Assembly: GCF_000143415.4 (NCBI RefSeq)
Contig: NW_003314325.1
Location: 522,567-586,566, forward strand
Direction of reading: 5' to 3'
DNA: 64,000 nt
Source of the DNA: Selaginella moellendorffii
Lineage: Eukaryota > Plantae > Lycopodiophyta
Positions 3,995-34,129 of this stretch are shown piece by piece. The notes beneath the pieces were generated by a model. That model did not search any database. It was given only the letters and a program-made list of their open reading frames with translations, and was not told where the DNA came from. Numbering within the stretch: position 1 is the first letter of the stretch; the number at the start of each line of letters is the position of its first letter. The position numbers were made by a program, and so were the translations under genes.

Positions 3995-4475
3995 AGTGTT
4001 TTTCACTCTATTAATACCTTTCCTGGAATGTTTCTAACTTTTTGATTTGCTTAAGTGCTTGGATATTCTAAAATATTCTACCATCTAATTCTTATATTAT
4101 TATTATAATTTATCTGATTGCTAGTATATAGTTACTCAAAGAGTTCATTGTAGAGTATAATACCAAGTCATTAATCTAAAATAATCATGGAACTCTCACC
4201 AAAAAACCTAATTCTCTTCTAGTAAAAACTTTTAGAATTCTTTCAATTGAACTAATAAGTAAAACTGAACAGGAATAACACTACTATTTAACAAAATAAT
4301 AGTATTTTTTTCAGGTTAGGTTTTTAGATATAATATTTAAATATGAAAGTTTCATTGATGAATTTCTATATTATAAATCTATAATATTATATTTGTAATG
4401 CTCTAGTGGATTAATTACTTCAATGCCATAGGATATGGATTGGATTAATTACTTCAATGCCATAGAACATGGATT

Positions 4476-4635
4476 TGTGAGTGCATAGAATATAAAAATG
4501 TGTATATTCAAATAGCCTAAAAACCTTAATTTATATATAGAAGTGACTGTTATAAAAAACCAATCCAATAGATATCAAAATCATATTACGCTAATATCAA
4601 TATATGGCATCAAAGCCATACACTTGGACCTTACA
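4476..4635 (-). repeat. 3' LTR of element D (degenerate family-B LTR)
   Basis: TG..CA termini; colinear with the reverse complement of 33723-33896. Confidence 0.85.
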
Positions 4636-6172
4636 TTATCTCTTTCTCTAGGAAGGATGGAACGTACTTAAGATTCTTTGGTTAATAAACAAGAATATGG
4701 AAAAACTTCAAGAAGAGGTATTTAGATGGTGCAACTTATTCCTGATCCCTTTGTATGAAGCATTTCAACCACTATATATATGCATAATTTTTAAAGGATC
4801 GATCTATTAAATATCATGCTAAACTTCACAAACTTGCAATCCAATTTATCACAACACTCAATATGGTCATTTCCACTAAGTAAAGATTTTTTTAGACAAA
4901 CAATTGAGAAAACAAACTAATACTAAGTCATCCACTTTGTACTTTGTAGGTGGATGATAATGAAAGTTGTAGCACCATTATTATCTCATTTGTATGCAAC
5001 CCAAGTATTCAATAAACTTCACTCAAACCAGTAAAGAATGCTTATTAAATATTGCTTCTAGTATCTAGCTCATGACAATTGTGAACGTAAATTCAACTCC
5101 TTTGGAAGTATTAAATCATGATTATATAAGAGTTTTTATGGTGAAGCACTAATGAAACTTTGAACCTTGTGATATACACATACCAAAGAAATTATCCCAA
5201 TCTAAATGTTTAAAGTACATATACTTTGCAATCATTCATCTAAAAGTTTGAACAAGCTATTTTAGTAAACCATTTATCTAAACATTTTTGACAGTGTGGC
5301 ATATCTTTAGCTTAGACGTTAAAACATGAATGCATCAGCTATAAATTCAAGACCATTATTCGAAAGAATATACTCTGAACAAAAATGCTAAAACACCATT
5401 CAATTGAGGAGGAAATATCCAATAGTAGTTACAAATGCACTAGCAACAACACCAATTTTCACCTAGTGAGTCATATAATTGAAAACAATAATGACATATT
5501 TTTTGCGAATAATTGATCGTGGAAAAATCCCCATTAAATCAAATGCCATCAACTCAAATGGACTCAAATTTACAATTGACTCAAACCATCTTTCTGCAGC
5601 ATGAGCAGGAGTATTATTAACTTAATATCAAACATAACTATGCATATTCTAGATAATATCATGTTGCATTTTCAACCAATACAAAAATATATATAACTTT
5701 TCAGTCATACATTGATGTTCTATATGCCTACCTAGAATAGAAGAGTCATTGTAAGTGTGGAGAAAATATAGAATAAAGATTGAAAGCACCATCAATTATA
5801 AATGATCAGTCTTTATAAAATAATAAGGTTGTCTTTAATATGATATTAATATTGTAAATGCTGAAATGATAAGTTATTAACAAGTGATTTAAGATTCTCA
5901 AACCCATCATGAAGCAATTGAAACCACAATTCAATCTTTTGAGCTTTATGAACCTCAATAAGAGGAGGTAAATTTTACTCTACACCTTGTGGATATTGAA
6001 CATCAACTATAGTAGATTTGACTAAATTTTTTATGGTGATTCATTATGCTAAGACTAAGTTGGTACTTTGTTTCTTTGAGAGTTTGCCCATTGAAATAAA
6101 ATAACAGGCTTGTAAGGAACATGAAAAGAGAGCAAAAAGATAAGCAAAACTTGAAAAAGGGCATTAGCATCA

Positions 6173-13625: not shown

Positions 13626-14949
13626 TGTAAGCTCTTAAATTTTTCCTTTCCAATTTGCCAGCTTACCTCGTCTATCCGTCCAACACTGCCTTGGCTTTTG
13701 CTAAGTTCCCTTGCCAAGGTTCTCGCCTATGGTACCAGCTCCTACTTGGTTTCAGCTACTCACTGCACGAGCAACGGAGTGTTAGCCATCCTTCCACGGA
13801 TTCCCAAATCACTCCCAATCCCCCTCCCCGGGTTAGACTGGACTTAAGGTTCGGCTACACTCCCCGCAAGCACAAGCAGCCAAGCACACCAAGCTTCCAG
13901 GTTCCTAACATCCTTTGGTACCACAAGACTTGATCATGGGACCCTCTAAATCCCAAGTCTTGAGTGCAACACTTGCTTCGGGACGCTGGGGCGAAACACC
14001 GTGGCCTAGCGGCCCGGTATGGGTACCTCTCGCCCCCCACTTCCATCCCGAAGGAAGGCCCAAGCCCCTAGGAAGGGCGAGGACCAATGAGCCGCATGGT
14101 ACTCAAGTGGGGCACCACTCCACATGAGCCGGGAGCACCGCAATCGGTTTCCCTTTCGGGAGTGGGAGCTGCTCTTGAGCACTTCCTTGGATGGCCCCTC
14201 CGGCACCAACCAAGTCCATGCTCACTCCCACCCAAGGCCCCTCGGTCCCAGTCCCAACCTCAAGTCAGTTTGGGAGCCCCACTGGAGAGTCCCTTCTAAA
14301 CTGGTTCCTGGACCTCTCTGTTTACCTTTATAATTAGCTTCCAACTTGTGTTGTTAATGGAGTCGTGCTAGAGGATTGCTGGTTCACATGTCTGAGTTTT
14401 TGGTTGCCTCAGTTATACTCAATTATATTCTTTAGGCCAATTATAGTCTATAGACTTATTTTCCTCATGGCTAGATGGATAATCTCAAAAATTTATCCCT
14501 ACTATACTTTTGGAACCCCCTGCAGCCCCCCCCCCCTGGGAGACGCACGCTTTGGGCTTTCACCCCTTGACCCGTATTAGTATTTGGACTTAGTCTCTGG
14601 CTCGATCTCGGACCCGATTTCGGATCCGACTTCGGATTCGGGTTCGGACTCGATCACGGACTCGATCTCGGACCCGATCTCGGACCCGACCTCGGACTCG
14701 ACCTCGGACTCGGTCTCGGACCCGATTTCGGATCTCGGACTCCGTCTCGAACTCGGTCTCGAACTCGGACTCGAACTCGGTCCCCGAGTCGGTCTCGGAC
14801 TCGATTCCGGACTCTATCTCGAACTCGGTCCTAGAGTCGGTCTTGGACTCGATCTTCGACTTGGTCCCATCCGATGAACTCTTTGTCATTTTGGTCATGC
14901 TTTCGGGGTTCCTTTAGCCTACGACACCTCGGCGAGTTGGTTCCTTACA
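13626..14949 (-). repeat. 5' LTR of A (1324 bp) with a private 177-bp insertion at 14317-14493
   Basis: TG..CA termini; direct repeat of 7134-8295. Confidence 0.95.
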
Positions 14950-17475: not shown

Positions 17476-18473
17476 TCATTCATTCATTCGTATACTGTTT
17501 AGCAGAGAAGCATACTCAAACTCATCCAGTTCTCCTTTGCTCTTCAATTCTTCAATCAATGCTTCATCTGCAGCTGCATACCGGTTATACCCTGGAGGCA
17601 TTTCTTCCTTGGATTTGTATAACTCGAAGCCTAGGCCTGCGTTGAGAAATCCATCGAGTCCCTGAAAAGCTTCCCAGATTTGAGATGCAAGAGGGCGGGG
17701 TGGCTCAGGCACAATGAAGATTCCCAAGTCTGGATGTTTTTTGCAGATCCGTTTGAGGTTTTCGTATTCAATCCGTTGGACGCAGAAACGAGGATGGTAT
17801 TGCGGGAAGTCTGCTACCTGAACGATATAACCCACCTGAAAACGTACACAAATAAACATACAAAGAAACAGAGAATAGAAACTGATACAAACTCCAAGAT
17901 GAATTCTCTTCATTGGTCCAGTGTAAGTCCTCTCTGCCCAGTCCTCATTTCGCAGGGGATCTCTTGAACAGTGATAAGTATCGTGTCCCTTCGCTAGGCA
18001 GAGGTAGCATTTCTTTTGTTCATGAGCAAAAGGATCCACTCCAGGCTAAAAAAAAAAAAAAAAAAAAAAACAAAGAGTCAAAAATTCAATAAGTGAGCTT
18101 TCTTACCCCCTTGCAGTGTCTTTCCCAATGACCTCTCTGCTTACATCTTCTGCATTGGTCGACGAGTAATCCCTCCTTCTCACCGGGACGATGAGTTCCT
18201 ATGATCTCGTACCTGTTACAAACAAAAGCAAGTAAACATCAAACCATATAACCTTGCTTACCTTGCTTGCATACGATCGTAATCGTCCTCGATTGCAAAA
18301 ATGTCCACCTCCTTCGGCTTTTCCTTTGTGAACTTCCTGTTGCTGCTGCCGCCGTCGTAAGCCTTCTTGTGCTGCCCGTTGCTGTTGTTGCCGTCGTAAG
18401 CCTTCTTGTGCTGCCCGTTGCTGTCGTTGCCGTCATAAGCCTTCTTGTACTGCCCGTTGCTGTAAGCCTTCAT
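17476..18473 (-). CDS. Spliced protein with two CCHC zinc knuckles and N-terminal 13-aa repeats; start uncertain
   Basis: Exons give CRRCKQRGHWERHC and CYLCLAKGHDTYHC; GT-AG introns; KAYDGNxSNGQHK repeats. Confidence 0.5.
18337..18470 (-). repeat. 39-bp coding tandem repeat (~3.5 copies)
   Basis: taagccttcttg at 18358, 18397 and 18436. Confidence 0.85.
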
Positions 18474-18937
18474 TTTCGGAAAGAAAATGTCCAGAACCAA
18501 CAGGGAGCTATACCAGATCGATAAGAGTCCGTTCTTGTCCTGCGGTATTGAAAACCAGCTTTAATTCGTCATGTGTATCGAGGATCCCTTACCTGGACAA
18601 TACTATCAAAGAGAGCCTTGAGGAGAGCTTTGGAACGCGATGTAGGTACCAGATCGGCAAGAATTCCTGTAGCAGCCTGCTGTATTGAAAAGATACGATG
18701 GAAGGCCGTATCACGGAGGGCCTTGAGGAGCGATGTAGCTCCGTAGCAGTGCAACACGATCACAATCGGAGACGAGATTCTGGTGATTACTAGCACTCTT
18801 AGCTAATGCGGACCGCCAAACCCTAAACTTTATACCAAGTATATTTGTAAGTATCCACAGTGTAAAATCAAACGAACGGCCACTGCTGTTCCCGCTGCTG
18901 TGGAACGAAAACTAGTTAAGTCAGTTATATGTTATTC

Positions 18938-21280
18938 TTATAAAGGTGGTGGATGTCTAATGTTACTGGCTTGCTCTAGAGCGTATGCTATCTCGATAAG
19001 AACACCCTCGGAGCCTTTGTTTCCCAGGAAGCAAATCCCAAATGGAAAACCGGTGGGAGGAGCGTAGCCTGCGGGGATCGAAATGGCAGGATATCCGGCG
19101 ATGGCTGCTGTGAGCGAGATTGCCGACACCGCAGTTGGAGCCACCAGCGCGTGGAGATCGTGCGTCTGGAGCAAGTAATCGATCCCATTCTCCGTGAGGA
19201 ACTTGTTCCTTGCGAGAGCATCTTTGTATGCTTGCGACTGTTGATCCTCTTGCCGAGCTTGAGCTTCGATGAATACATCTTGGCCAAAACGATCTAGTTT
19301 CTGCACAGTTTTGTGTAAATTTTAGAGTTTTTTCAGCGGTTCCTACCTGGTCTGTGTGTTCCTCGTTGAATCTAATCACGTCCTCGAGGCTGCGAACTTT
19401 GCTTGTGGTGAGCTCGGACAGATACTTCTGAAGATCATGCTTGAAATCGATTTGTAGCACCAGATCCTCGTTCTTTGTGCTCACGATCTCTTCAGCGTTA
19501 GGCAGCTCCAGATCCTTGACAATCACTGCTCCTCTAGCTCTGTCCCAAAGAAAGAAAAGAAAAAAAGAGCAAAGATTTCAAAGCATGAACGAGGATACTT
19601 AAAACCCAGTCACTCACATTGCCAGAGAAAAGAGTTTCTCCATATCACCAGAAATATCTTTGATGACAAAGTATTCTCCAGCAAGCACGCCCAGCCTCTT
19701 CCCGCGAAGACCATCCCTTTTCAGAAACTGCTTGTATCCTCCTCTGGGAATGTATGCAGCCGCGGCAGTAGTAGCACTGTCGAGATCATCTACACCAACG
19801 ATCACGTCGAGAACTTCGACCGCATCTTTCATGGTTCTGCAAATCGGCCTGTGATAATCCAAGCGTTAAAAGCTGTAAAATTTCGTGATCATAACTCTTG
19901 ATTACCCGACTGAGTCCATATTATGCGAGAGCGGGATCACTCCCGCTCGGCTCGTGAGTCCAACCGTGGGCTTGATCCCGACGACTGCAGCAAAACTGGC
20001 CGGGTTGATTATCGAGCCATCGGTCTCCGTCCCGAGAGTGACTGTAGCCATGTTTGCAGAAACTCCGACTGCGGAGCCGCTGCTGGAACCGAAAGTTGTT
20101 TGGACTGGATCATATGGATTCTGTTTTCAACAACAATCGCAAGATCAGAAATGAAAAAAAGAATCAGCTTATACATACCATGGTTTGTCCACCACGGGGA
20201 CTCCACCCATGCGGAGCTTCTGTAGATCTGAAATACATCCACTCGCTAAGGTTGGCTTTGCCGAAGATGATCGCACCGGCGTCACGTAACTTCTTCACAA
20301 CGCCAGCGTCTCTTGGAACAATGGAATCGACCAGAGCCAGAGATCCAGCCGTGGTCTGGAGCTTGTCCTTCGTGGCGATATTGTCCTTGAGAAGAATTGG
20401 AATGCCGCGCAAGCCTACGACAGAACAGAAAAAAACACACAGAAAAATATCACAAAATTATATAAACTGAAATGCAAACCTTTGCAACTCTCGGCTCCGT
20501 GTTGTTTCCTGTAAGTATCGGCTTCATTGGCGAGCTCCAATGCATCGGGAGACACCTCGATCACGGCTTTGAGCTGGGGATTCAGCCGCGTGATCCGAGC
20601 AATGTAAAACTCCACCAGCTGTTTTGATGTTAGAGTTCCTGCTTTCAGTGCTTCTTGAATGTCTTCCACAGTGGCTTCTTCGATTTGGAATTGTGGAGTT
20701 GGAACAATACCGTCGGGCTCAAAGCTTCCAACCATTGTAAGCAGCACACGATCTTCACCATATTTTCCTTGGATCTTTTGCAAGTCACACTTGAAGTCAC
20801 CTTCTAGCATGCTGTACATTTGCGGAAGCCATCAAATATCAATCACACACTTCTTTGAAGCGAGCACTTACACTCTGTTCCCAAACTCCTCCTGGATAAT
20901 GGCCCTCAAAGTTTCAGAATAATGCACAATAACCTCTCGAAACCTTCGGAAAAACAGAGATATGAAACAGAAAGGAAAATGTTTTCGGAAGTGAAAACCA
21001 TGTACCTGTAGATTGTTGGGTCTTGAATGATCCCAGGAGCCAGTGAGCGAAGTGGGATGGCTTCCATGGCCCGAATGAGCTCGTCAGAGAGTGTAGGAAC
21101 CGCCATTTGCAAACGCTGGGCTTGCGCTCTGCAAAGCGGTGCCTGGCGGTGAAACAATTGAGCAGCATATAAATTCGTGACACCCATCTCTTGGGCAATC
21201 TGGTTGAAGCTCTTCCCTGCATTTTGCTTGGCTTCCAGAAGCCGCAGCACAAGCTCCTCTTTTCTCACATCTGTAGCCAT
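18938..21280 (-). CDS. Cyanase-like/amidase-signature fusion protein (~638 aa, 8 exons)
   Basis: Exons 21280-21006, 20943-20872, 20811-20480, 20414-20179, 20120-19906, 19848-19618, 19539-19347, 19300-18938 all splice in frame (GT-AG). Cyanase motifs DPTIYRFRE and IIQEEFG; amidase LKDN, GSSSGS, TETDGS. Confidence 0.85.
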
Positions 21281-21452
21281 AGCCCCTAAGTATTGAGTGC
21301 CAAGGGCTCGTCAAGTTATCCACTCCCACAAGTTAACTGCATGGTTAGGACAATTACCCTGGTTTAAAACTTTTAACATAAAAGGCTAAATTACAAACTA
21401 CTAAATTAATAAAGGGTAAAGGACTTATGTCTTGAAAAATGACAGACAGAGC

Positions 21453-22323
21453 TTAATCCTCAGCTTCGGTAAACTGAGCTTCTATGTAGATCGACTCAGT
21501 GTTCTCTTCTCCTTTCTCAATCATGGAAACTTTAAATTGAGCTAAATGCTCATCACCTGCAGCAAAACAGTATATGCATAAGATAAAAATTACTATTTTG
21601 TATCATCTTGTACCAAATGTGATTGAGCTGCCCGGGGGAACTGGAGTGACAGCTCCAGGTCTCACTCTCCTGTTATTAACGAAGGTCCCGTTGGTACTGT
21701 CTAAATCAGTTACCATAAGCATCGAATCTCTCTTCTCAAGCCGGGCATGTAATCCAGAAACTAAAACAAAATTGAGACGAAGAAATTACACATTATGTGA
21801 AACAATTACCTGTTCCAACTGGAATTACAATGTCTGCCTTGTCAGCCACACGTCCCACCGTGGCCGCATCCTATTAGCAAGATCAAACTCTAGATTATCA
21901 ATCTAAAGTAGACCCATCAAATAAAAAAAGTAGAGAGGTCATGGGTTTTTGACTTACAGTAGAGAGCTCAAATGCACTTGGCAAAGGAACTTCTTCGCCT
22001 ATGTGGCGGCAATCACCATCTCCTACACCCATTAAAATCTCATCAAAGAAAAAAAGAAGAAAGTCATGAGAAACACTCCTATTCTTCACACCTATGGGCT
22101 CGAGAAGCCATTTCGTGTCCACAGCAGCGGCAGCGAAAAGCCTCGCAAAACTGGAGCTTCGTTGCCAAATCCGCGTTTCCCTAGAATGTGTTTGCACCAA
22201 ATTTACATTCAATCCAATCGCTCCACCTCCACAGTGATTCCAAAGCGCGCGCGAGGAGGGCCACGACGAGGGCGCCACTGCCGGCCACGCCCGGGGATTT
22301 AGCTGCTGCATCAAAGCCGGCAT
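21453..22323 (-). CDS. FHA-domain protein, probably plastid-targeted
   Basis: Spliced: KWLLEPIGDGDCRHIG, TVGR, VSGLHARL, VTDLDSTNGTFVN; transit-peptide-like N-terminus. Confidence 0.85.
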
Positions 22324-22879
22324 TGTTCCAATCTACAGATTTTCACCTTATCTTCAGGCATCAACTGCCACGTCAAGTATACACGCCTACATGGCAAAAC
22401 ACGTGGCAGATATAGAATCCGAGCGTCGAACTGAGCCGTGGAGGTCACAAAGCGGCTCATAAGCTGTCCTCTGTAGAGGGCTCCCGTTTTCCTGCTTAGA
22501 TGCGAGCAAACTTACTAGCAAAATAGAATGGCTTGCTGTTTAAGTTCATAGTTTCATAATAACGTAAGAAGCCATAGAACTAAAGTTTAAGGTTATAGTC
22601 TGGACGTTGCGACAGCATTTATGTCTATGTTGGTCCCTACTCTCTGGTGAAAGTAGAGATCTGTTAGTATGAGAAGCACATAGCTTGATGTGCAGGAAAA
22701 CAAAGCGTCAAATTAAATCGCAGTAAGAACTAGCTAGACCGGAGATCCTGACCGGGAAGAATTCGCAGGTACAACAGCAAACACACGAAACCCTGCTTTC
22801 AGGGCGTCCCTGTAGATAGGAGCTAGTGGGAATATAAAAACTCACTTGCTGGTGAGTTCAGAAAATTGTTCGACTCTTT

Positions 22880-24980
22880 TCCAAAGACTCTGACGTCTCC
22901 ACTTCTCCTCAGAGGCCATTACGAGAGCAGCTACAAAAGAGAACGAACTACAAAATTTAAGTTCTTACCGTGTACGCAGCGATCGACCTCCAGATTGCAT
23001 TTATCTGAGCCAGAGATTATCAGGAGCCCGCCAGCTCCTGGTGGGATGAGGATTGTGCATAGGCATATCTTTTGTGCGTGCAGGCCCGTTGGCAGACAGC
23101 CCAGCCACTGGCTCAGTTGAGAAAAGCCTTTCAGCGTACAAGCGCCACAATCTCAAATAGGCATATAGGGTATTCAAAAAGCCAAAACCAATCCACCTGC
23201 AAGACAAAAAGATTTGGGAGAAGCACCTACATCAACAAACCAACAGGGAATATGGAAAACTTCCCTGGAACAAGAATCTAGACTTCATCCCGCTGGAGTC
23301 GGGATGACAGCAATGCGTGTCAGAAGCCCTCACACCAATCATCAATCGCCTCTGGAACACAGGCCTCCCGGAATCATGGACAGTTAACAGAGTCGTGCCC
23401 ATACACAAAAGGGGAGATCTGACCAACTATTGAACCATTGCAGTCTCCAGCATCTTCAAGAAAATCTTTGTGAAACAAGTTGAAAAAAAATATCAGCATG
23501 GGCTGAGGAAAATCAGATCCTGCAAGCAAGCAAGCTTCCGTACGCGTAAACATCAGGATCACGTGTTAATGGAACACACCAGACTGGGGTGGAGCAAGGT
23601 GTTCATCTTAGGCTTTGTAGATTTTGCTCAGTCATTTGACTTGGTCCCGCAAAACTTCGGAATTGATCAGCTCCTCCATTTGGAGGCACCCACTCCACTT
23701 GTTGCGGTGATTGTGGAGTTGTACAGGATAGTGAAACTCTAGATGTTTGCAGGGGATATAGTCCCTTCAACTATGGGAGTTTGACAAGGCTGTCCCTTGT
23801 CACCAACCCTCTTCACAATCTATATTGGCGCACTAGAGACAATGATCTAGGGAGAGAATTTCACAGTATACCAACTTTCTGGGATGTATCTCTTTCTGCT
23901 CCTCTATGCTGATGACTTCTTTTTAGCGGCACCAAATATCACAACCATACAACGCTTGTTTGACACACTCGCACAATTTTGCATGCAAGCGGGCACTCTC
24001 CAAAACACAGATTATGATCTTTGGCAATCCCCCACTCACACATGTCTCTACAATGGCAAACCAGTGCGAGCATACAAGTACCTTGGCTACACTCTACATC
24101 GCCAGGGACCTGGACACATGGGGTCAAAGAGAGTGAAAGCCGCACAATTTGCCTATTACAGTCTCTAATTGGATTGTCACAATAATGTTGTGACTAGCTA
24201 GAAGGCAAAACGGGCATTCTATTTTGCCAAGGTTTGAGCCATATGGGATACCTCAACATCCAATTCATCAACCACGAGTTCCAGGTGTGGCTGCAATCTT
24301 GGTCCGAGAAAGTGGTTTACTGCCACTAGATATCTTGGCATCGAAGAGGACCATTGTTCTTGTGAAAGCCTCTGGAAGAGATCGTTGGCCACTCAAGCAA
24401 TGGAAGATTCCATCAGCCTCATGTATTGGTGGCTGGTGGCACAAGTTAAAGGCATGGACCGAATCGCTGGGTTTGAATCTAGAACTGTCCGATCCATTTG
24501 ACGATTATCCAGTATGGATGAACCAGGCCATACAAAATTGGTTAGCATGTATAACTGAGGGCACCACAAAATATGCCATATACTGGGTGACACTTGGATC
24601 TCCATGGATATGCACAATCCTTGCTACCTACAGCTGTGGAGCACACGGTTTACAAGTGGAGTTTAGATGCCACATATCCCTTGAGAGCACTGTCTATGCC
24701 AGCAATGTGACCCTGGTCAGGTGGAGGTGTTCTCTATCAATGCCTAAGCTATCAACATCTACAGGACCAGACACCCCTCCCCTGGCAGCAGTGGGATCAA
24801 GCATCCATACTTAGTGATGGCCATTTGCAGCAAATCACATGGTACCTCCAGGGTGTGGACCACTTTGGACAAGACAACCAAGACAAAAGAGACTAAAAGG
24901 GAAGGAGCAATGCATTGCATTCATGTAGATAGAGTCCTATACTTTCTAGTTGGGCAGAAGTGGACTATAAACAACTCTAT
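22880..24980 (+). mobile_element. Degenerate, 5'-truncated non-LTR retrotransposon (LINE) RT
   Basis: VVPIHKRGD, FVDFAQSFDLV, QGCPLSPTLF, LLYADD; many stops and frameshifts; ends approximate. Confidence 0.75.
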
Positions 24981-25199: not shown

Positions 25200-26230
25200 A
25201 AAAGTCTCATGATCTGTGATGCAACAGACTGGAGATTTATTCGCTGGCATGCCCAAACACACCAACAGCCGTTTGTAGAGTTCTGAGATTGGGAACAGTA
25301 ATTTCAAGGAGGAAACCACAACTAGCTCAGCTTCACACATCAAACCTGTAGTTTCTCCACCTATTTGCAATTCTTGCTGGTTTTGGTGGCACTGACAGGC
25401 AAAGATTGAATGTCACTTCACTCTCCAGTAGCCTGGGCAAAATGGATGCCTCAATCAAGCAGTGGATCTGATGTATGTTGTGTTGTGGAATATGATCATC
25501 ATGGCATTTGAATTGTTTGAGCTATGGATGTGTTTGACCGCATATCTGGATGGTATTGGGTATACCATAGCTGCATATGAAGAAGATTTTTGAGACAATG
25601 CCCAAACACTATGCTTTCTTGTGGAACATGATCATTGCCAAGAATACTCAATCCAAGTAGCTTGTTAACACTACATCTGCCTTCCATGCAATGCCTGATA
25701 ATGCTTGGATGGCTACTGACAAGCTATGAATCATTTCAACTCACTCCAGCTTGAGGTAGTGATCCTAATGAGATCTTATTCTTTGTGGTTTTGATCACCT
25801 TTAGTCACATCAGTGAGTCCATGAAGCTTGGGAGAAGTTCATAGAAGATATGATTTCAAACTATGGCTTGCAACCTATGAGAGAACATGTATTGTTGACA
25901 GACTTGGGAGATCAAGATAGTTGCAGAGGAATTGATAAAGAGTATATAGCAATCTAAAATTGCCTGCTCAATGCAAAGCTATACAATGGTGGGAAGAGTG
26001 GCCATTGACAATCTTATACATATTGATCCAATAGCTTATGTTTCAAACATTGATGTCTTTATTAGACATATATAACATCCCAAACAGATCTTGTTTGGGA
26101 TCTCATTTAGACTTGTAGTATATCATGTATGTGCTAGCTAATTGATGTCACACAATAATATATTGTAGATATGAATAGCATCATAATTATGTGAGCACAT
26201 ATAATACTCAGGATAGGAGAGTACCATTGA
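25200..26230 (+). pseudogene. PPR (PLS-type) pseudogene, copy 1
   Basis: LFAGMPKH, VVLWNMII, VFDRI and IFETMPKH..LWNMII motifs with disruptions. Confidence 0.55.
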
Positions 26231-26730
26231 CACAATAACACCCCAAAAAGATTTGGAGCAGAAGATGATGTACTAAAAATTGAACTTCCAACCTTGATAA
26301 AATGTGCTATGATAGAGAAAGGGAGTGCAATGAGGATAAAAGAAGAATAGATCTGTAGATTTGTTAAAATTAAAGTCAATCTAAAGTACCAAGACAAATA
26401 ACAATAACCTATTTACCCATTTCCTCCAGTGCTATATGTGATATACAAGTATGCATGGATGAATCAGATTCAATCAGCATATGCAAGATTATCATAAATA
26501 GTCTGGATAATTAAATAAAAGCATAAGATTGAACCATAACAAATTCAAGTAAAATAATAGATGAATTATTCTTTTACTATAAAATATACTAGTATTTAGA
26601 ATATAAAATAAAATAATATATTCTTTTAGAATGTTTAGATATTTTTTATGGACAGTTTATATAAGCTATACAATATTTTGTTTTTGAGGTAGGAATTTTA
26701 TGTGAGAAATTTCTTAAAAAATCATAAACT

Positions 26731-27642
26731 ATGTACTTGCCTAGTGTACTTCAATTTTTCTTTTATTTTATTTTATTTTATGCTGATGAAATTCATTACA
26801 GAGAAAAAGATTTACTTGTTTTAAATCAAAATTTTACAGATGTTATTATATTTGCGATACTTCGTCTAATTAATCAAAATATTCCTCTTAATACTCCAAT
26901 ACCCATGGGACAAAGAATGTCTTCTAATCAAACTTATAATAATCCAAATCTGGGTTTTATAGATTTTAATGTACAAATATGGATGTTTAGTCAAGAAAGA
27001 GGGAGAAATTTTAGATGCAGACCAGATTTTGGAGACCTTAGAAACAGTGATGATATTAGGCATGATCTTGCTGAGATAATATTACAATATCGTCCTGCTT
27101 TTTTGCGTTTAGGATCTAGATTAATAGCATTAACAGTTGGAAATTATGGCATTTATTATTTTGTTAGAAATATTCCTCCTCGACAACTATTTGAAGAAGG
27201 CTCTAAAATATTTATAATACCTTTTGGCTATAATGATTGTCACATCTATCTTAATACATTAATTGGTAACACTTTATATAACAAACTATTACCTAAAACA
27301 TTTTTACAATCCTCAAATCAAAAGGCACATCTCTATTTAAATCATAAATGTGAATTAGTTTTATATGTTGGTAAGGTAAATAAATGGTCAATTCTAAGAA
27401 ATGGTAACAATTGTTATCTTGTAGTTCAACAAGATGGCAATTTAGTTTTCTATTCTGAAAATAGAATAGCTTTATGGTCACCAAATAAGTATTGTTATTT
27501 ATCTAATAATTGTATAATGAATACCTACCTTACTTTACATGATAATTGCATTCTAGCTTTTTATAAGGATATACAAGACTCATTTTCAAGGACTCCAAAA
27601 TTTGAATTACTTTGGAAAAGTGAAAATACCATATGTGAGTGA
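26731..27642 (+). CDS. Intronless AT-rich protein with an N-terminal hydrophobic signal and a C-terminal bulb-type (GNA) lectin domain
   Basis: 303-aa ORF; LVVQQDGNLVFY..ALWS matches the QxDxNxVxY mannose site; flanked by two degenerate subdomains. Confidence 0.7.
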   Translation: MYLPSVLQFFFYFILFYADEIHYREKDLLVLNQNFTDVIIFAILRLINQNIPLNTPIPMGQRMSSNQTYNNPNLGFIDFNVQIWMFSQERGRNFRCRPDFGDLRNSDDIRHDLAEIILQYRPAFLRLGSRLIALTVGNYGIYYFVRNIPPRQLFEEGSKIFIIPFGYNDCHIYLNTLIGNTLYNKLLPKTFLQSSNQKAHLYLNHKCELVLYVGKVNKWSILRNGNNCYLVVQQDGNLVFYSENRIALWSPNKYCYLSNNCIMNTYLTLHDNCILAFYKDIQDSFSRTPKFELLWKSENTICE

Positions 27643-28629
27643 CTTATATCATTATAAATATTTTTTTCCAATATTCCAAACCATATGTCTATTATTTAGG
27701 TAAATATTAAATAATCAAGTACTTAAATTGGAAAAAGTTAATCTCACTAATCAGATAAAAGAGATAATATTATTTCTTTAAAAGTTTTACTTAATATTAA
27801 TTTGTTAGATAGAATATTTATCTTTGTTGGCTATTAAAATTAAATCTGATGGATTCTATAAGGTTCACTCCAAAAAATAGTCACATTATAGCTAGCGTTA
27901 GCTATTCAGTTCAATTTAAATAAATAAATACAAATTGTTTAACTATAATAATTAATAAAATTAATGTCAAATTTTGATGTTTAAAAATGTAATCCACTGT
28001 GCACAACAATCCTCAAGAACCTCCTGGGCAGCTGGATTGTCCACCATGTGTGGAATTTGGGGCTGCTGGAGCGGCAGATCCTCATGGATAATCTCATCAG
28101 GAAGACAAACTTGAAAAAAATTATAACTTTTCATGAATGTACCACTAAAATATATGAACAAAAATACAAAATATATAATATACATACATATACAACAACG
28201 CATTTATAGTTTGGTCTCACTCTGGTCTCCTTCTTCTTCTAGCCAACATTACATTACAGGCTCTTTATAGGGCGTAATTTATCTAAGCAGGGGATGTGGT
28301 TGGGAGTTTAGGGTGCTGAAATTAAAAAAAGAAACAAATTTTATTTTTTTTTGTATTGTTTACAAAAATTACTGTCATGAGCATACACAGACAATGCAGT
28401 GTTGTAGGTAAAAAACTACCACGTCTAGTGGAAAATCACGTGGCTGTTATGGAAGTGCAAGCTCAGAGATCAGCAAGAAAATAATGGGCAAGAAAATCAT
28501 ATGTTATCTATAATAGAAACCTGATACGTTATGCAGTTTTATAATTATGCTTTAAAAGAATCACATATGGTTATGAGCTACTTAAAAACCGCAATAGAAA
28601 GTGAGACAAACTTGAAGACGAATTCTCTT

Positions 28630-31530: not shown

Positions 31531-32108
31531 AGCTCTGATCTTGCATCTGGGACGATCAATTTTACAAACAAGATTGGAAGGAGCAAGAGTAACATTGCTA
31601 TGTGAAAGACAATGTACCAAAAATTGAATTTCCAACCTTGATCAAGAATAACAATGTGCTATGACAGAGAAAGAGAGTGCAATGAGGATAAAAAACGAAT
31701 AGATCTGAACATAACTATAGCCAAAAAAATAAATTTGATCTAAAGTACCGAAATAAAGAACAATAGAAATGTTTTCAACTCTTTCCTCTACTAAAATTGA
31801 GTGCTATATGTGACTAAATTATTTAAGGGTTAAACCATTACTTGTATACAAGCATGCATTGATACATCCAGTGTGCATAATAAATTAGAAGCATAAGATT
31901 GAACCCATAACCTCATGATAAATTTGAGTAGATGAATTGCCTTTTTACTATAAAATATACTCACAAAGGAATAATTAGAAAATAGAATAAAATATTATAT
32001 TCCTTTAGAATGTTTAGTTAGTTTTGATGGAGAATTTATATATGCTATAAATTTTTTGTTTTTGATGTAAGAGTTTTATGTGAGAGATTTCTTACAAAAT
32101 CATAAAAT

Positions 32109-33011
32109 ATGTATTTGTATACTGTACTTAAATTTTTATTTTATTTTAGTTTATTTTATGCTGATAAACTTCTTTACAGAGAAAAATATTTACTTGTTAT
32201 AAATCAAAATTTTACATTATATTATATTTGGGATACTTCGTCTAATTAATCAAAATATTCCTCATAATACTCCAATACCCATGGGACAAGGACTGTCTTT
32301 TAATCAAACTTACAATAATCCAAATCTTGGCTTTTTAGATTTTCATGTACAAATATGGATGTTTAGTCAAGAAAGAGGGAGACATTTTAGCTGCAGACCA
32401 GATTTTGGAGAGCTTTGAAACAGTGATGATATTAGGCATGATCTTGCTGATATAATATTACAATATTGTCCTACATTTTTTATTTTAGGATCCAGATTAA
32501 TAGCATTAACAGTTATGGCATTTATTATTTTGTTAGAAATATTCCTCCTCAGAAAATATTTGAATAAGGCTCTAAAATATTCATAAAACCTTTTGGATAT
32601 AATGATTGTCACATCTATCTTAATACATTAATTGATAACACTTTATATAACAAACTATCACCTAAAACATTTTTACAATCCTCAAATAAAAAGGCACATC
32701 TCTATTTAAATCATAAATGTGAATTAGTTTTATATGTTGGTAAGGTAAATGAATGATCAATTCTAAGAAATGGTAACAATTGTTATCTTGTAGTTCAACA
32801 AGATGGCAATTTAGTTTTCTATTATGAAAATAAAGTAGCTTTATGGTCACAAAATAAGTATTGTTATTTATCAAATAATTGTATAATGAATACCTACCTT
32901 ACTTTACAAGATAATTCCATTCTAGCTTTTTATAAGAATACACAGGACTCATTTTCAAGGACTCCAAAAGTTGAATTATTTTGGAAAAGTGAAAATACCA
33001 TGTGTGAGTGA
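32109..33011 (+). pseudogene. Pseudogene copy of the bulb-lectin gene
   Basis: Colinear with 26731-27642; TGA near 32415, deletion/frameshift near 32513, further stops. Confidence 0.85.
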
Positions 33012-33897
33012 TTTATATCATTATAATTTTTTCCAATGGTGGACATAGTGCTATACTTTTTAATCAAGGTAAATATTAAATAAATAAAAGTACTTAAATT
33101 GAAAATATTTAATCTGGTGTTACTAATCAATTACAAGAGATATTATTGTTTCTTTTAAAGTCTTACTTAACATTAATTTGGTTTGCAGATAGAATATTTA
33201 TCTTTAGATGGTTATTAAAATAAAATCTTAAGGGCCAAGATGGATTCTATAGTGTTTATAAACTGTTTTACTCTTTAAAAAAATCTCTTTACCAAAACTT
33301 TACCATTTGCATGTTTAGATACATAACCAAGCACTTTACATTTACTTGGGAAGGAAAACACAAATCATCAAATACTTTTCTTGGTGACTTCTAGAATGTA
33401 TTACATCCAGACTCTACCACAATGAACTTTTGGAAGTGATAGAATGTTAAATGAAGTAATTGTGTGTAAGATTGGAAGAGGAAGAGAGGATCGATTATAG
33501 AGAAACATTGCTCTTTATATATCATTTTTGGGCAATTGTTGCCTCATCCAATTTTATGGACCTTGAAAATGAAAATATCTGATATGATCCATCTTTAACA
33601 TGGTATGTAGTTATTGATTCTCCCTTAGCATTTACATATTTATTATTTTAATTAATTTACATTATAAAAACAAATTAACAATTTACATTATATTTAATAA
33701 TTTATATATTTAAATATTGCTATGTGAGGGCCAAGTGTACGGCTACGATGCCGTATACTAATATTAGCGTAGTGGATTTTGGTAGCCGTCGGATTGGTTT
33801 CAATCCGGACCACTCGCTCCTGTATATAAGCTAGGGTTTTTGGGTTAATTGATATGCACATTTCTGTATTCCCTTTCCATATTCCATGCACTCACAT

Positions 33898-33913
33898 TGG
33901 TGGAGGTGAGGGG
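33898..33913 (+). promoter_or_regulatory. PBS of B, tRNA-Ala-like
   Basis: TGGTGGAGGTGAGGGG is complementary to ..CCUCCACCA-3'. Confidence 0.7.
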
Positions 33914-34129
33914 CACCTTTGATTGTCCCTGGGGAGTGCTTGGATTTGGGATTTCGGTTTAGATCTAGCTTTTGCATTGTCTAGATCTAGCTTTTTCCAT
34001 TTCCTTTCTTTTGTTCTTTCCTTTCAGGATTTTGGTTTAGATCTAGCTTTTTGCATTGTCTAGATCTACCATTTCTTTCTAGCTTTTTGTCATTTCTCTT
34101 CTTTTGCTCTTTCTTTCTCATTCATTTTC

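Follow-up and report, generated by a model that had tools for sequence, protein, structure and literature searches.

Cyanases are assembled from intertwined dimers packed into a pentamer of dimers, and this homodecamer is needed for the active site. In a fungal cyanase, the site lies between adjacent dimers within the decamer, the ligand is held by an Arg, a Ser side chain and the next Ala's backbone, and the Glu forms a salt bridge with the Arg of another subunit (PMC7801690). The S117A mutant of Arabidopsis cyanase (AtCYN) fell from 2.286 to 0.040 U/mg (~2% activity) and eluted at ~63 kDa instead of ~211 kDa, the decamer being lost; AtCYN E94L behaved like S117A (PMC3070753). Among amidase-signature proteins, Arabidopsis At4g34880 is functionally uncharacterised (PMC8393822; PMC3699661), and Toc64-III and OM64 are plant pseudo-enzymes of this class fused to TPR domains (PMC8393822). 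Here we describe a gene of the lycophyte Selaginella moellendorffii in which a cyanase-like domain and an amidase of the At4g34880 type are encoded as one protein. The gene lies on the minus strand of a 64,000-nucleotide (nt) window (NCBI RefSeq assembly GCF_000143415.4, contig NW_003314325.1, positions 522,567 to 586,566), and all coordinates below are those of the window. Both families were already known, as was the sequence, whose RefSeq name gives no sign of the cyanase part; the cyanase-amidase combination was not found in the other proteins or papers searched.

The coding region consists of 8 exons, all joined in frame (1917 nt, 638 amino acids (aa); Table 1), and introns 1–7, all GT..AG, are 62, 60, 65, 58, 57, 78 and 46 nt long. 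Eight open segments were read from the three minus-strand frames of 18800–21400. An automatic listing of every in-frame GT-AG combination gave 12,240 models and was uninformative, and the exons were then chosen by hand from splice consensus. The resulting model was afterwards confirmed by RNA contigs (below) and by RefSeq, its product being identical, letter for letter, to XP_002984896.2 ("probable amidase At4g34880", S. moellendorffii). An earlier reading made from the letters alone (the sequence-only reading) had proposed eight exons spliced in frame to ~638 aa, with a cyanase-like part running stop-free into an amidase within one exon, and both points held. The frame is closed by a stop 10 codons upstream of Met1, and no ATG occurs in between. 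Exon 3 remains open where the cyanase-like part ends, across PTPQ and on into the amidase N terminus; since exons 1–3 have no stop codon of their own and the junction lies inside exon 3, these exons cannot be a separate gene. The scaffold of the second haplotype (GL377635) carries an allele of the same length (638 aa, XP_002985952.2). In the first JGI annotation the locus had been given two models, a partial cyanase-like one of 141 aa and an amidase of 486 aa, and the old GenBank models split both alleles (EFJ14146.1/EFJ14145.1 and EFJ13130.1/EFJ13129.1), with the amidase begun at Met142 (MVGSFEP). Because these split models are also found in derived UniRef entries, the fusion would be missed by architecture searches in UniProt-based resources. 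The fused model corrects the older ones.

In seventeen public RNA runs, half or more of the 31-mers sampled from the locus were present (shares of ~0.53–0.68), and the top shares were near the value expected from an intron-less copy. Contigs from four runs, each from a different study, were aligned to 18800–21450. Each run gave a single contig of 1870–1999 nt, extending from the 3′ untranslated region (UTR; 18828–18920) to 21215–21294, and the furthest 5′ end, in one run, lay 14 nt upstream of the ATG. The contigs lacked all seven introns, with every joint at exactly the modeled site and 0–5 mismatches; the intron 6 joint was omitted from the joint listing (repeat skipped) and was visible in the contig alignments. 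These contigs confirm that the fusion gene is genuine and expressed, with one mRNA for both domains. The sequence-only reading had pointed to RNA across the junction as a check and had named transcripts that start at the amidase part, or never span the junction, as the outcome that would count against a fusion. Spliced contigs from four studies span the cyanase-amidase joint; an additional internal start is compatible with the same contigs.

The cyanase-like part was matched by Pfam Cyanate_lyase (PF02560) at aa 84–146 with 65 bits (gathering cut-off, 25 bits); the other haplotype scored 61.8 bits and the canonical S. moellendorffii cyanase (SmCYN, described below) 97.6 bits. The CYNS_N profile stayed below its cut-off on the fused domain (17.6 vs 27.1), and canonical SmCYN was also without a listed CYNS_N match. 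Residues 8–148 aligned to solved cyanases with E values of 1e-16 to 1e-19, and identity to plant cyanases was 41–52%. An AlphaFold (AF2) model built with 91 homologs (predicted local distance difference test (pLDDT) 87.3, predicted template modeling score (pTM) 0.80) shows a five-helix N-domain (H1–H5), helix H6 and a long two-stranded β-hairpin, with pLDDT dropping to 56 at aa 151–160, the linker. The 18 best Protein Data Bank (PDB) matches to the AF2 model were all cyanases (template modeling score (TM) 0.71–0.83), and the ESM Atlas model of the same part had a TM of 0.89 to plant cyanase models. Residues 1–152 are predicted to form the full two-domain cyanase fold.

The catalytic Arg-Glu-Ser set is incomplete in this domain. 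YRFRE is present, with R92 and E95 retained (R96 and E99 in E. coli), and the canonical loop GDGIMSAIDF reads GNRVMLEGDF, with 6 of its 10 residues changed. Leu118 occupies the position of the catalytic Ser (S122 in E. coli) and Glu119 that of the adjacent Ala, in the two haplotypes and the RNA contigs alike; RNA and genomic letters agree at the Leu118 codon, which indicates that no editing restores the Ser. The canonical GK(F/Y)LP motif is GSFEP, two invariant residues being altered. On a conservation profile of 113 canonical eukaryotic cyanases, the fused domain retained 31/43 positions that are at least 95% conserved, 22/33 at 80–95%, 13/54 at 50–80% and 3/25 variable ones, and the canonical Selaginella cyanase retained 40/43, 27/33, 21/54 and 3/25, respectively. 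The 12 lost conserved positions are clustered and include D114, G115, I116, S118, K145 and L147, all 100% invariant, plus A119 and I120. With Leu for Ser and Glu for Ala at the substrate-binding loop, canonical cyanase activity of the fused domain is very unlikely, as judged from these changes together with the published mutant and structural data on cyanases.

The amidase half is of the peptide-amidase type: aa 157–636 align end to end with the peptide amidase Pam of Stenotrophomonas maltophilia (1M21, 5AC3; Pam residues 6–490, E = 1e-102), and Pfam Amidase (PF01425) matched aa 181–577 with 260 bits (gathering cut-off, 27 bits). Other amidase-signature subfamilies were weaker (GatA, 1e-42; FAAH and the remainder, weaker still), and matches to allophanate hydrolase (E 1e-21 to 1e-28) did not extend beyond the N-terminal half of that domain. 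By alignment to 1M21, the triad K236 (LLKDNI), cis-S317 (GSSSGS) and S341 (TDGSI) is complete, and the Ser-Ser spacing of 24 residues is the same as in Pam, whose pair we take to be S202–S226 in the numbering of Labahn et al. (2002). The NCBIfam equivalog PRK08137 gave 475 bits against a cut-off of 534, its match beginning at profile position 28; as this model is bacterial, the sub-cut-off score mainly reflects distance. In the ESM Atlas, the amidase part had a TM of 0.97 to a streptophyte amidase cluster, and the nearest plant cluster representative (479 aa) aligned to aa 159–638 and has no N-terminal extension. The fused protein ends with the amidase, with no further C-terminal domain. When the amidase part was sought in bacterial and archaeal genomes by a related-locus search, there was no match. 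From these alignments, aa 157–638 look to be an active amidase-signature hydrolase of the Pam/At4g34880 type. The residues on which the sequence-only reading had commented were all as it described them: Arg and Glu of YRFRE intact (R92, E95), GIMSA reading RVMLE with the Ser position taken by Leu118, and the amidase triad in place at K236, S317 and S341.

The fused protein can be set beside several described systems. It shares with the plant cyanases (AtCYN, OsCYN; E. coli CynS, 1DW9; PF02560 + PF21291) the two-domain fold and the Arg-Glu pair, and with Selaginella CYN also intron positions. It departs from them in the change of Ser to Leu, the 6/10 altered loop residues, the altered GK(F/Y)LP motif and a very long branch, and in being fused rather than standalone, with a 482-aa amidase in place of the short last CYN exon. 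The group formed by Pam (1M21/1M22, 5AC3) and plant At4g34880 ('FAAH4') is matched over the full length and in the intact triad, whereas the fused protein adds a 156-residue cyanase-like module where bacterial profiles have ~27 or more leader residues. Toc64-III and OM64 likewise combine a plant amidase-signature domain with an unrelated module, one enzyme-derived part being dead; in Toc64, however, the dead part is the amidase, whereas here it would be the added cyanase, and the amidase looks active. Allophanate hydrolase (4ISS, 4GYS) also joins an amidase-signature enzyme to a small domain tied to carbamate/CO2/NH3 chemistry and offers a precedent for channeling, but its accessory domain is C-terminal and unrelated to cyanase, and that of the fused protein is without the catalytic Ser.

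A search with canonical fern cyanase found a separate canonical cyanase gene in S. moellendorffii (scaffold GL377728; 161 aa, loop GDGIMSS), so that a second CYN gene, which the sequence-only reading had listed as a point to check, is present and has its Ser intact. The 141-aa cyanase piece used as query gave 14 candidates with two fern matches, and the Selaginella paralog was not among them. The SmCYN gene has three introns, the third after ..LPHIVQ. In SmCYN, introns 1 and 2 split the Arg codon of YR and the Ile codon of GDG-I-MS, both in phase 2, and the fused gene has both introns at matching places and in the same phase. DNA homology between the two genes stops 2 nt short of the SmCYN exon 3/intron 3 boundary; past this end, the fused gene proceeds via PTPQ to F157, the first residue that aligns with mature Pam. 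In a maximum-likelihood tree, the fused domain fell within the land-plant cyanases (support 94/92) on a stem branch of 1.55 substitutions per site, compared with 0.62 for SmCYN and a median of 0.14, and a clade of the fused domain and SmCYN was not rejected (approximately unbiased (AU) test, p = 0.37). The tree and the AU result fit a lineage-specific duplication followed by rapid change. From the shared introns and the end of homology at the exon 3 boundary, we infer that a DNA-level duplicate of a plant CYN kept introns 1 and 2 and, with its short last exon gone, became joined to the start of an amidase at the exon 3/intron 3 boundary. For the canonical CYN locus, which is flanked by OPT, eIF3 and KNOX genes and by no amidase, descent of the fusion from a tandem CYN-amidase pair was rejected.

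Two large protein searches gave no second cyanase-amidase protein. In an exhaustive HMMER search of exon 1 against 1.84 billion representatives (276 hits), the fused protein was the only one of more than 400 aa among the best 150, and a word-index search of 351–1116-aa proteins, scored on aa 1–160, returned its own cluster alone. The longer HMMER matches that were inspected were read-through gene calls, save a SPRY-cyanase transcript of Acetabularia acetabulum (EukProt; 371 aa, N-terminal SPRY 88 bits, C-terminal cyanase 58 bits). This transcript encodes the sole other clear multi-domain cyanase protein among the hits inspected; unlike the fused protein, it has the cyanase at the C terminus, SPRY as the partner and no amidase. 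No account of a cyanase-amidase architecture emerged from the literature searched (cyanase with Selaginella, amidase, fusion or PF02560). The chimera thus looks lineage-specific and is so far known in S. moellendorffii only, with the limit that the collections searched may lack transcriptomes of other Selaginella species. This agrees with the sequence-only reading, which had proposed a lineage-specific chimera and asked whether the architecture is already common in databases: neither the best 150 HMMER matches nor the word-index search contained a second cyanase-amidase protein. The metagenome proteins nearest to exon 1 (JGI/ENA, 55–58% identity) are prokaryote-style calls on eukaryotic (moss-like) contigs that read past ..PTIYR into the intron, some of them labeled 'XRE-family transcriptional regulator'; these are mis-annotated first exons of plant cyanases.

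Comparison of the two alleles gave 16 exonic and 6 intronic differences. Their proteins differ at 11 residues, 7 in aa 1–158 and 4 in the other 480; the cyanase-like part of ~156 residues holds 6–7 of these and the 482 amidase residues 4–5, according to where the boundary is set. The ratio of non-synonymous to synonymous differences per site (pN/pS; Nei-Gojobori) was 1.75 for aa 1–156 (6 non-synonymous, 1 synonymous) and 0.63 for the amidase (6, 3), counts that rest on the 16 exonic differences and are too few to tell relaxed from adaptive change. The difference in non-synonymous density between the cyanase part and the amidase gave a Fisher p of 0.012 or 0.08, depending on the assignment of the linker. 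Loop residue 114 is N in one haplotype and T in the other (GTRVMLEGDF), and at all 31 retained conserved positions the alleles are identical. The allele comparison suggests that present constraint is weaker on the cyanase-like part. The substitutions of the long branch avoided the conserved fold positions, which counts against pure decay.

On this evidence we lean, with moderate confidence, to a cyanase module that is a pseudo-enzyme, self-associating or otherwise non-catalytic, carried on a Pam-type amidase. The product would be a 638-aa protein of cytosolic type, with no N-terminal signal sequence, in which a competent amidase bears at its N terminus a complete, catalytically disabled copy of a plant cyanase. 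The module would keep the fold and the inter-subunit Arg-Glu pair and be without the substrate-binding Ser/Ala loop; it would no longer break down cyanate, a task that would fall to the separate canonical CYN gene, and it would make the amidase at least dimeric. Loss of cyanase activity and an oligomerizing role are both inferred, the latter because the hairpin of every solved cyanase is stable in no form other than an intertwined dimer and because the Arg-Glu pair is retained. Several points weigh against this view. A decameric scaffold is doubtful by analogy with the AtCYN Ser-to-Ala mutant, which fails to form decamers, so that a dimer alone is a safe expectation. The allele pN/pS is explained equally well by relaxed constraint and by a functional module that evolves fast, and the frame would stay open in any case, the amidase being downstream in the same open reading frame (ORF). 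The fusion is seen in one species. Finally, the contigs do not show where transcripts start, and they are compatible with a shorter transcript or with internal initiation at Met142. The sequence-only reading had offered two roles for the cyanase part, channeling of a cyanate or carbamoyl substrate and an oligomerizing or sensing pseudo-enzyme. The losses in the loop and the motif and the AtCYN mutant lean to the second; nothing supports channeling, which is unlikely.

The same data allow other explanations. The cyanase-like part could be a neutral passenger, a functionless leader whose site decayed after the fusion and whose frame is open only to spare the downstream amidase. The pN/pS of ~1.75 (6 non-synonymous to 1 synonymous difference), the very long stem branch, the loss of six invariant positions and the occurrence of the architecture in a single known species all favor this explanation, and we give it real weight while judging it unlikely. 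It sits poorly with the unevenness of the substitutions, as retention is 72% and 67% in the two most conserved classes vs 24% and 12% in the least conserved, and with the absence of haplotype differences at the 31 retained conserved positions; the full cyanase fold is still predicted with high confidence, and an unfolded leader of 150 residues would probably be deleterious. Quite improbable, in our estimate, is a neo-functional domain, in which a remodeled anion pocket would bind or convert a carbamoyl, ureido or carboxylate substrate, product or regulator of the amidase. Such a pocket would be formed by the kept Arg92/Glu95 and the new Leu118, Glu119 and Arg115, and by analogy would resemble the coupling in allophanate hydrolase, whose second domain completes the reaction by processing the carbamate-type product. 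Gene fusions commonly connect enzymes of one pathway; moreover, Arg and Glu are kept, the other loop residues are substituted and not deleted, and the amidase-signature relatives include allophanate, biuret-related and urethane hydrolases. However, the canonical site requires four subunits of the decamer and the Ser, the N/T difference at residue 114 indicates that the new loop is not tightly constrained, E values place the amidase much nearer to peptide amidase (1e-102) than to the allophanate hydrolases (1e-21 to 1e-28), and there is no conserved family showing selection for a new site. A broader 'Rosetta stone' version, to which we assign slightly less weight again, would place At4g34880/Pam-type amidases in the nitrogen-salvage route of cyanase (acting, for example, on carbamoylated or ureido compounds), with the remodeled pocket as a site for the substrate or product of the amidase, in a two-site enzyme on a cyanase-type oligomer.

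Lower still we rate a minor role for the fused ORF, with the amidase alone, made from an internal transcription or translation start at Met142, as the main product. The old models EFJ14145/EFJ14146 do divide the locus, with the amidase starting from MVGSFEP, and contigs are blind to transcript starts. Each of the four runs nevertheless gave a single spliced contig, with no alternative piece listed; exons 1–3 have no stop of their own, and RefSeq now has both alleles at 638 aa. Least credible is a still-active cyanase with a variant site, which would make the protein a true bifunctional cyanase-amidase. Arg92, Glu95 and the overall fold are kept, but the Ser, 100% invariant in the 113 canonical sequences, is Leu here, the adjacent D, G, I, A and I positions are changed too, Ser-to-Ala mutants lose activity, and a canonical CYN gene is present. 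If the pseudo-cyanase is a scaffold, as in the reading we favor, the protein would be a clean natural case of an obligate-oligomer enzyme fold reused as an assembly module, a mirror image of Toc64. The fusion also gives a handle on the uncharacterised At4g34880 amidases of plants, through a possible link to cyanate/carbamoyl metabolism.

Table 1. Features of the cyanase-amidase fusion gene, in window coordinates.
Feature	Position	Strand	Remarks
Spliced mRNA extent	18828..21294	-	Contigs from public runs; short 5′ UTR, 3′ UTR of ~70–110 nt
Complete coding region	18938..21280	-	ATG 21280–21278, stop 18940–18938; 8 exons, 638 aa; identical to XP_002984896.2
Exon 1	21006..21280	-	Helical N-terminal domain of the cyanase and first part of its C-terminal domain; aa 1–91 and 2 nt of codon R92
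Exon 2	20872..20943	-	Helix H6 with R92 and E95 (E95, 20936–20934); start of remodeled loop, G113 N114 R115, at 20882–20874
Exon 3 (junction exon)	20480..20811	-	Remaining cyanase β-hairpin, 4-residue linker, first 70 amidase residues
Codons M117 L118 E119 G120 D121 F122	20793..20810	-	L118 at the position of the catalytic Ser; E119 at that of the substrate-binding-backbone Ala
Linker PTPQ, aa 153–156	20691..20702	-	Between V152 (last cyanase-derived residue) and F157 (first amidase-aligned residue)
Amidase-signature part (peptide-amidase type), aa 157–638, exons 3b–8	18938..20690	-	Pam alignment, Pfam, family profiles
Exon 4	20179..20414	-	Splice model and RNA contigs
Catalytic Lys236 codon	20386..20388	-	Alignment to 1M21
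Exon 5	19906..20120	-	Splice model and RNA contigs
cis-Ser317 codon (GSSSGS signature)	20085..20087	-	Alignment to 1M21
Nucleophile Ser341 codon (TDGSI)	20013..20015	-	Alignment to 1M21
Exon 6	19618..19848	-	Splice model and RNA contigs
Exon 7	19347..19539	-	Splice model and RNA contigs
Exon 8, stop codon included	18938..19300	-	Splice model and RNA contigs

An Rfam scan of the window gave no match. Upstream of the fusion gene, an FHA-domain gene (PF00498, with a Yop-YscD_cpl match) occupies 21450–23210 on the minus strand. It ends only ~170 bp before the ATG of the fusion gene, whose promoter must therefore be very compact, and separate RNA contigs begin at 21367–21377. Downstream, a zf-CCHC-type gene lies at 17520–18500 on the minus strand, and its 5′ coding part contains a 39-bp tandem repeat (18339–18463; 3.2 copies, 93% matches) encoding a repeated ..NSNGQHKKAYDG.. 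unit. A 12-bp tandem repeat of ~22 copies (74% matches) at 14601–14855 is open over long stretches in both directions, one strand reading as Ser/Asp-rich and the other as Arg/Asp/Val-rich, and is probably low-complexity DNA and not a gene. Very low G+C (0.26–0.28) was found at 4001–6000, 26001–28000 and 32001–34000, compared with a background of 0.45–0.53.

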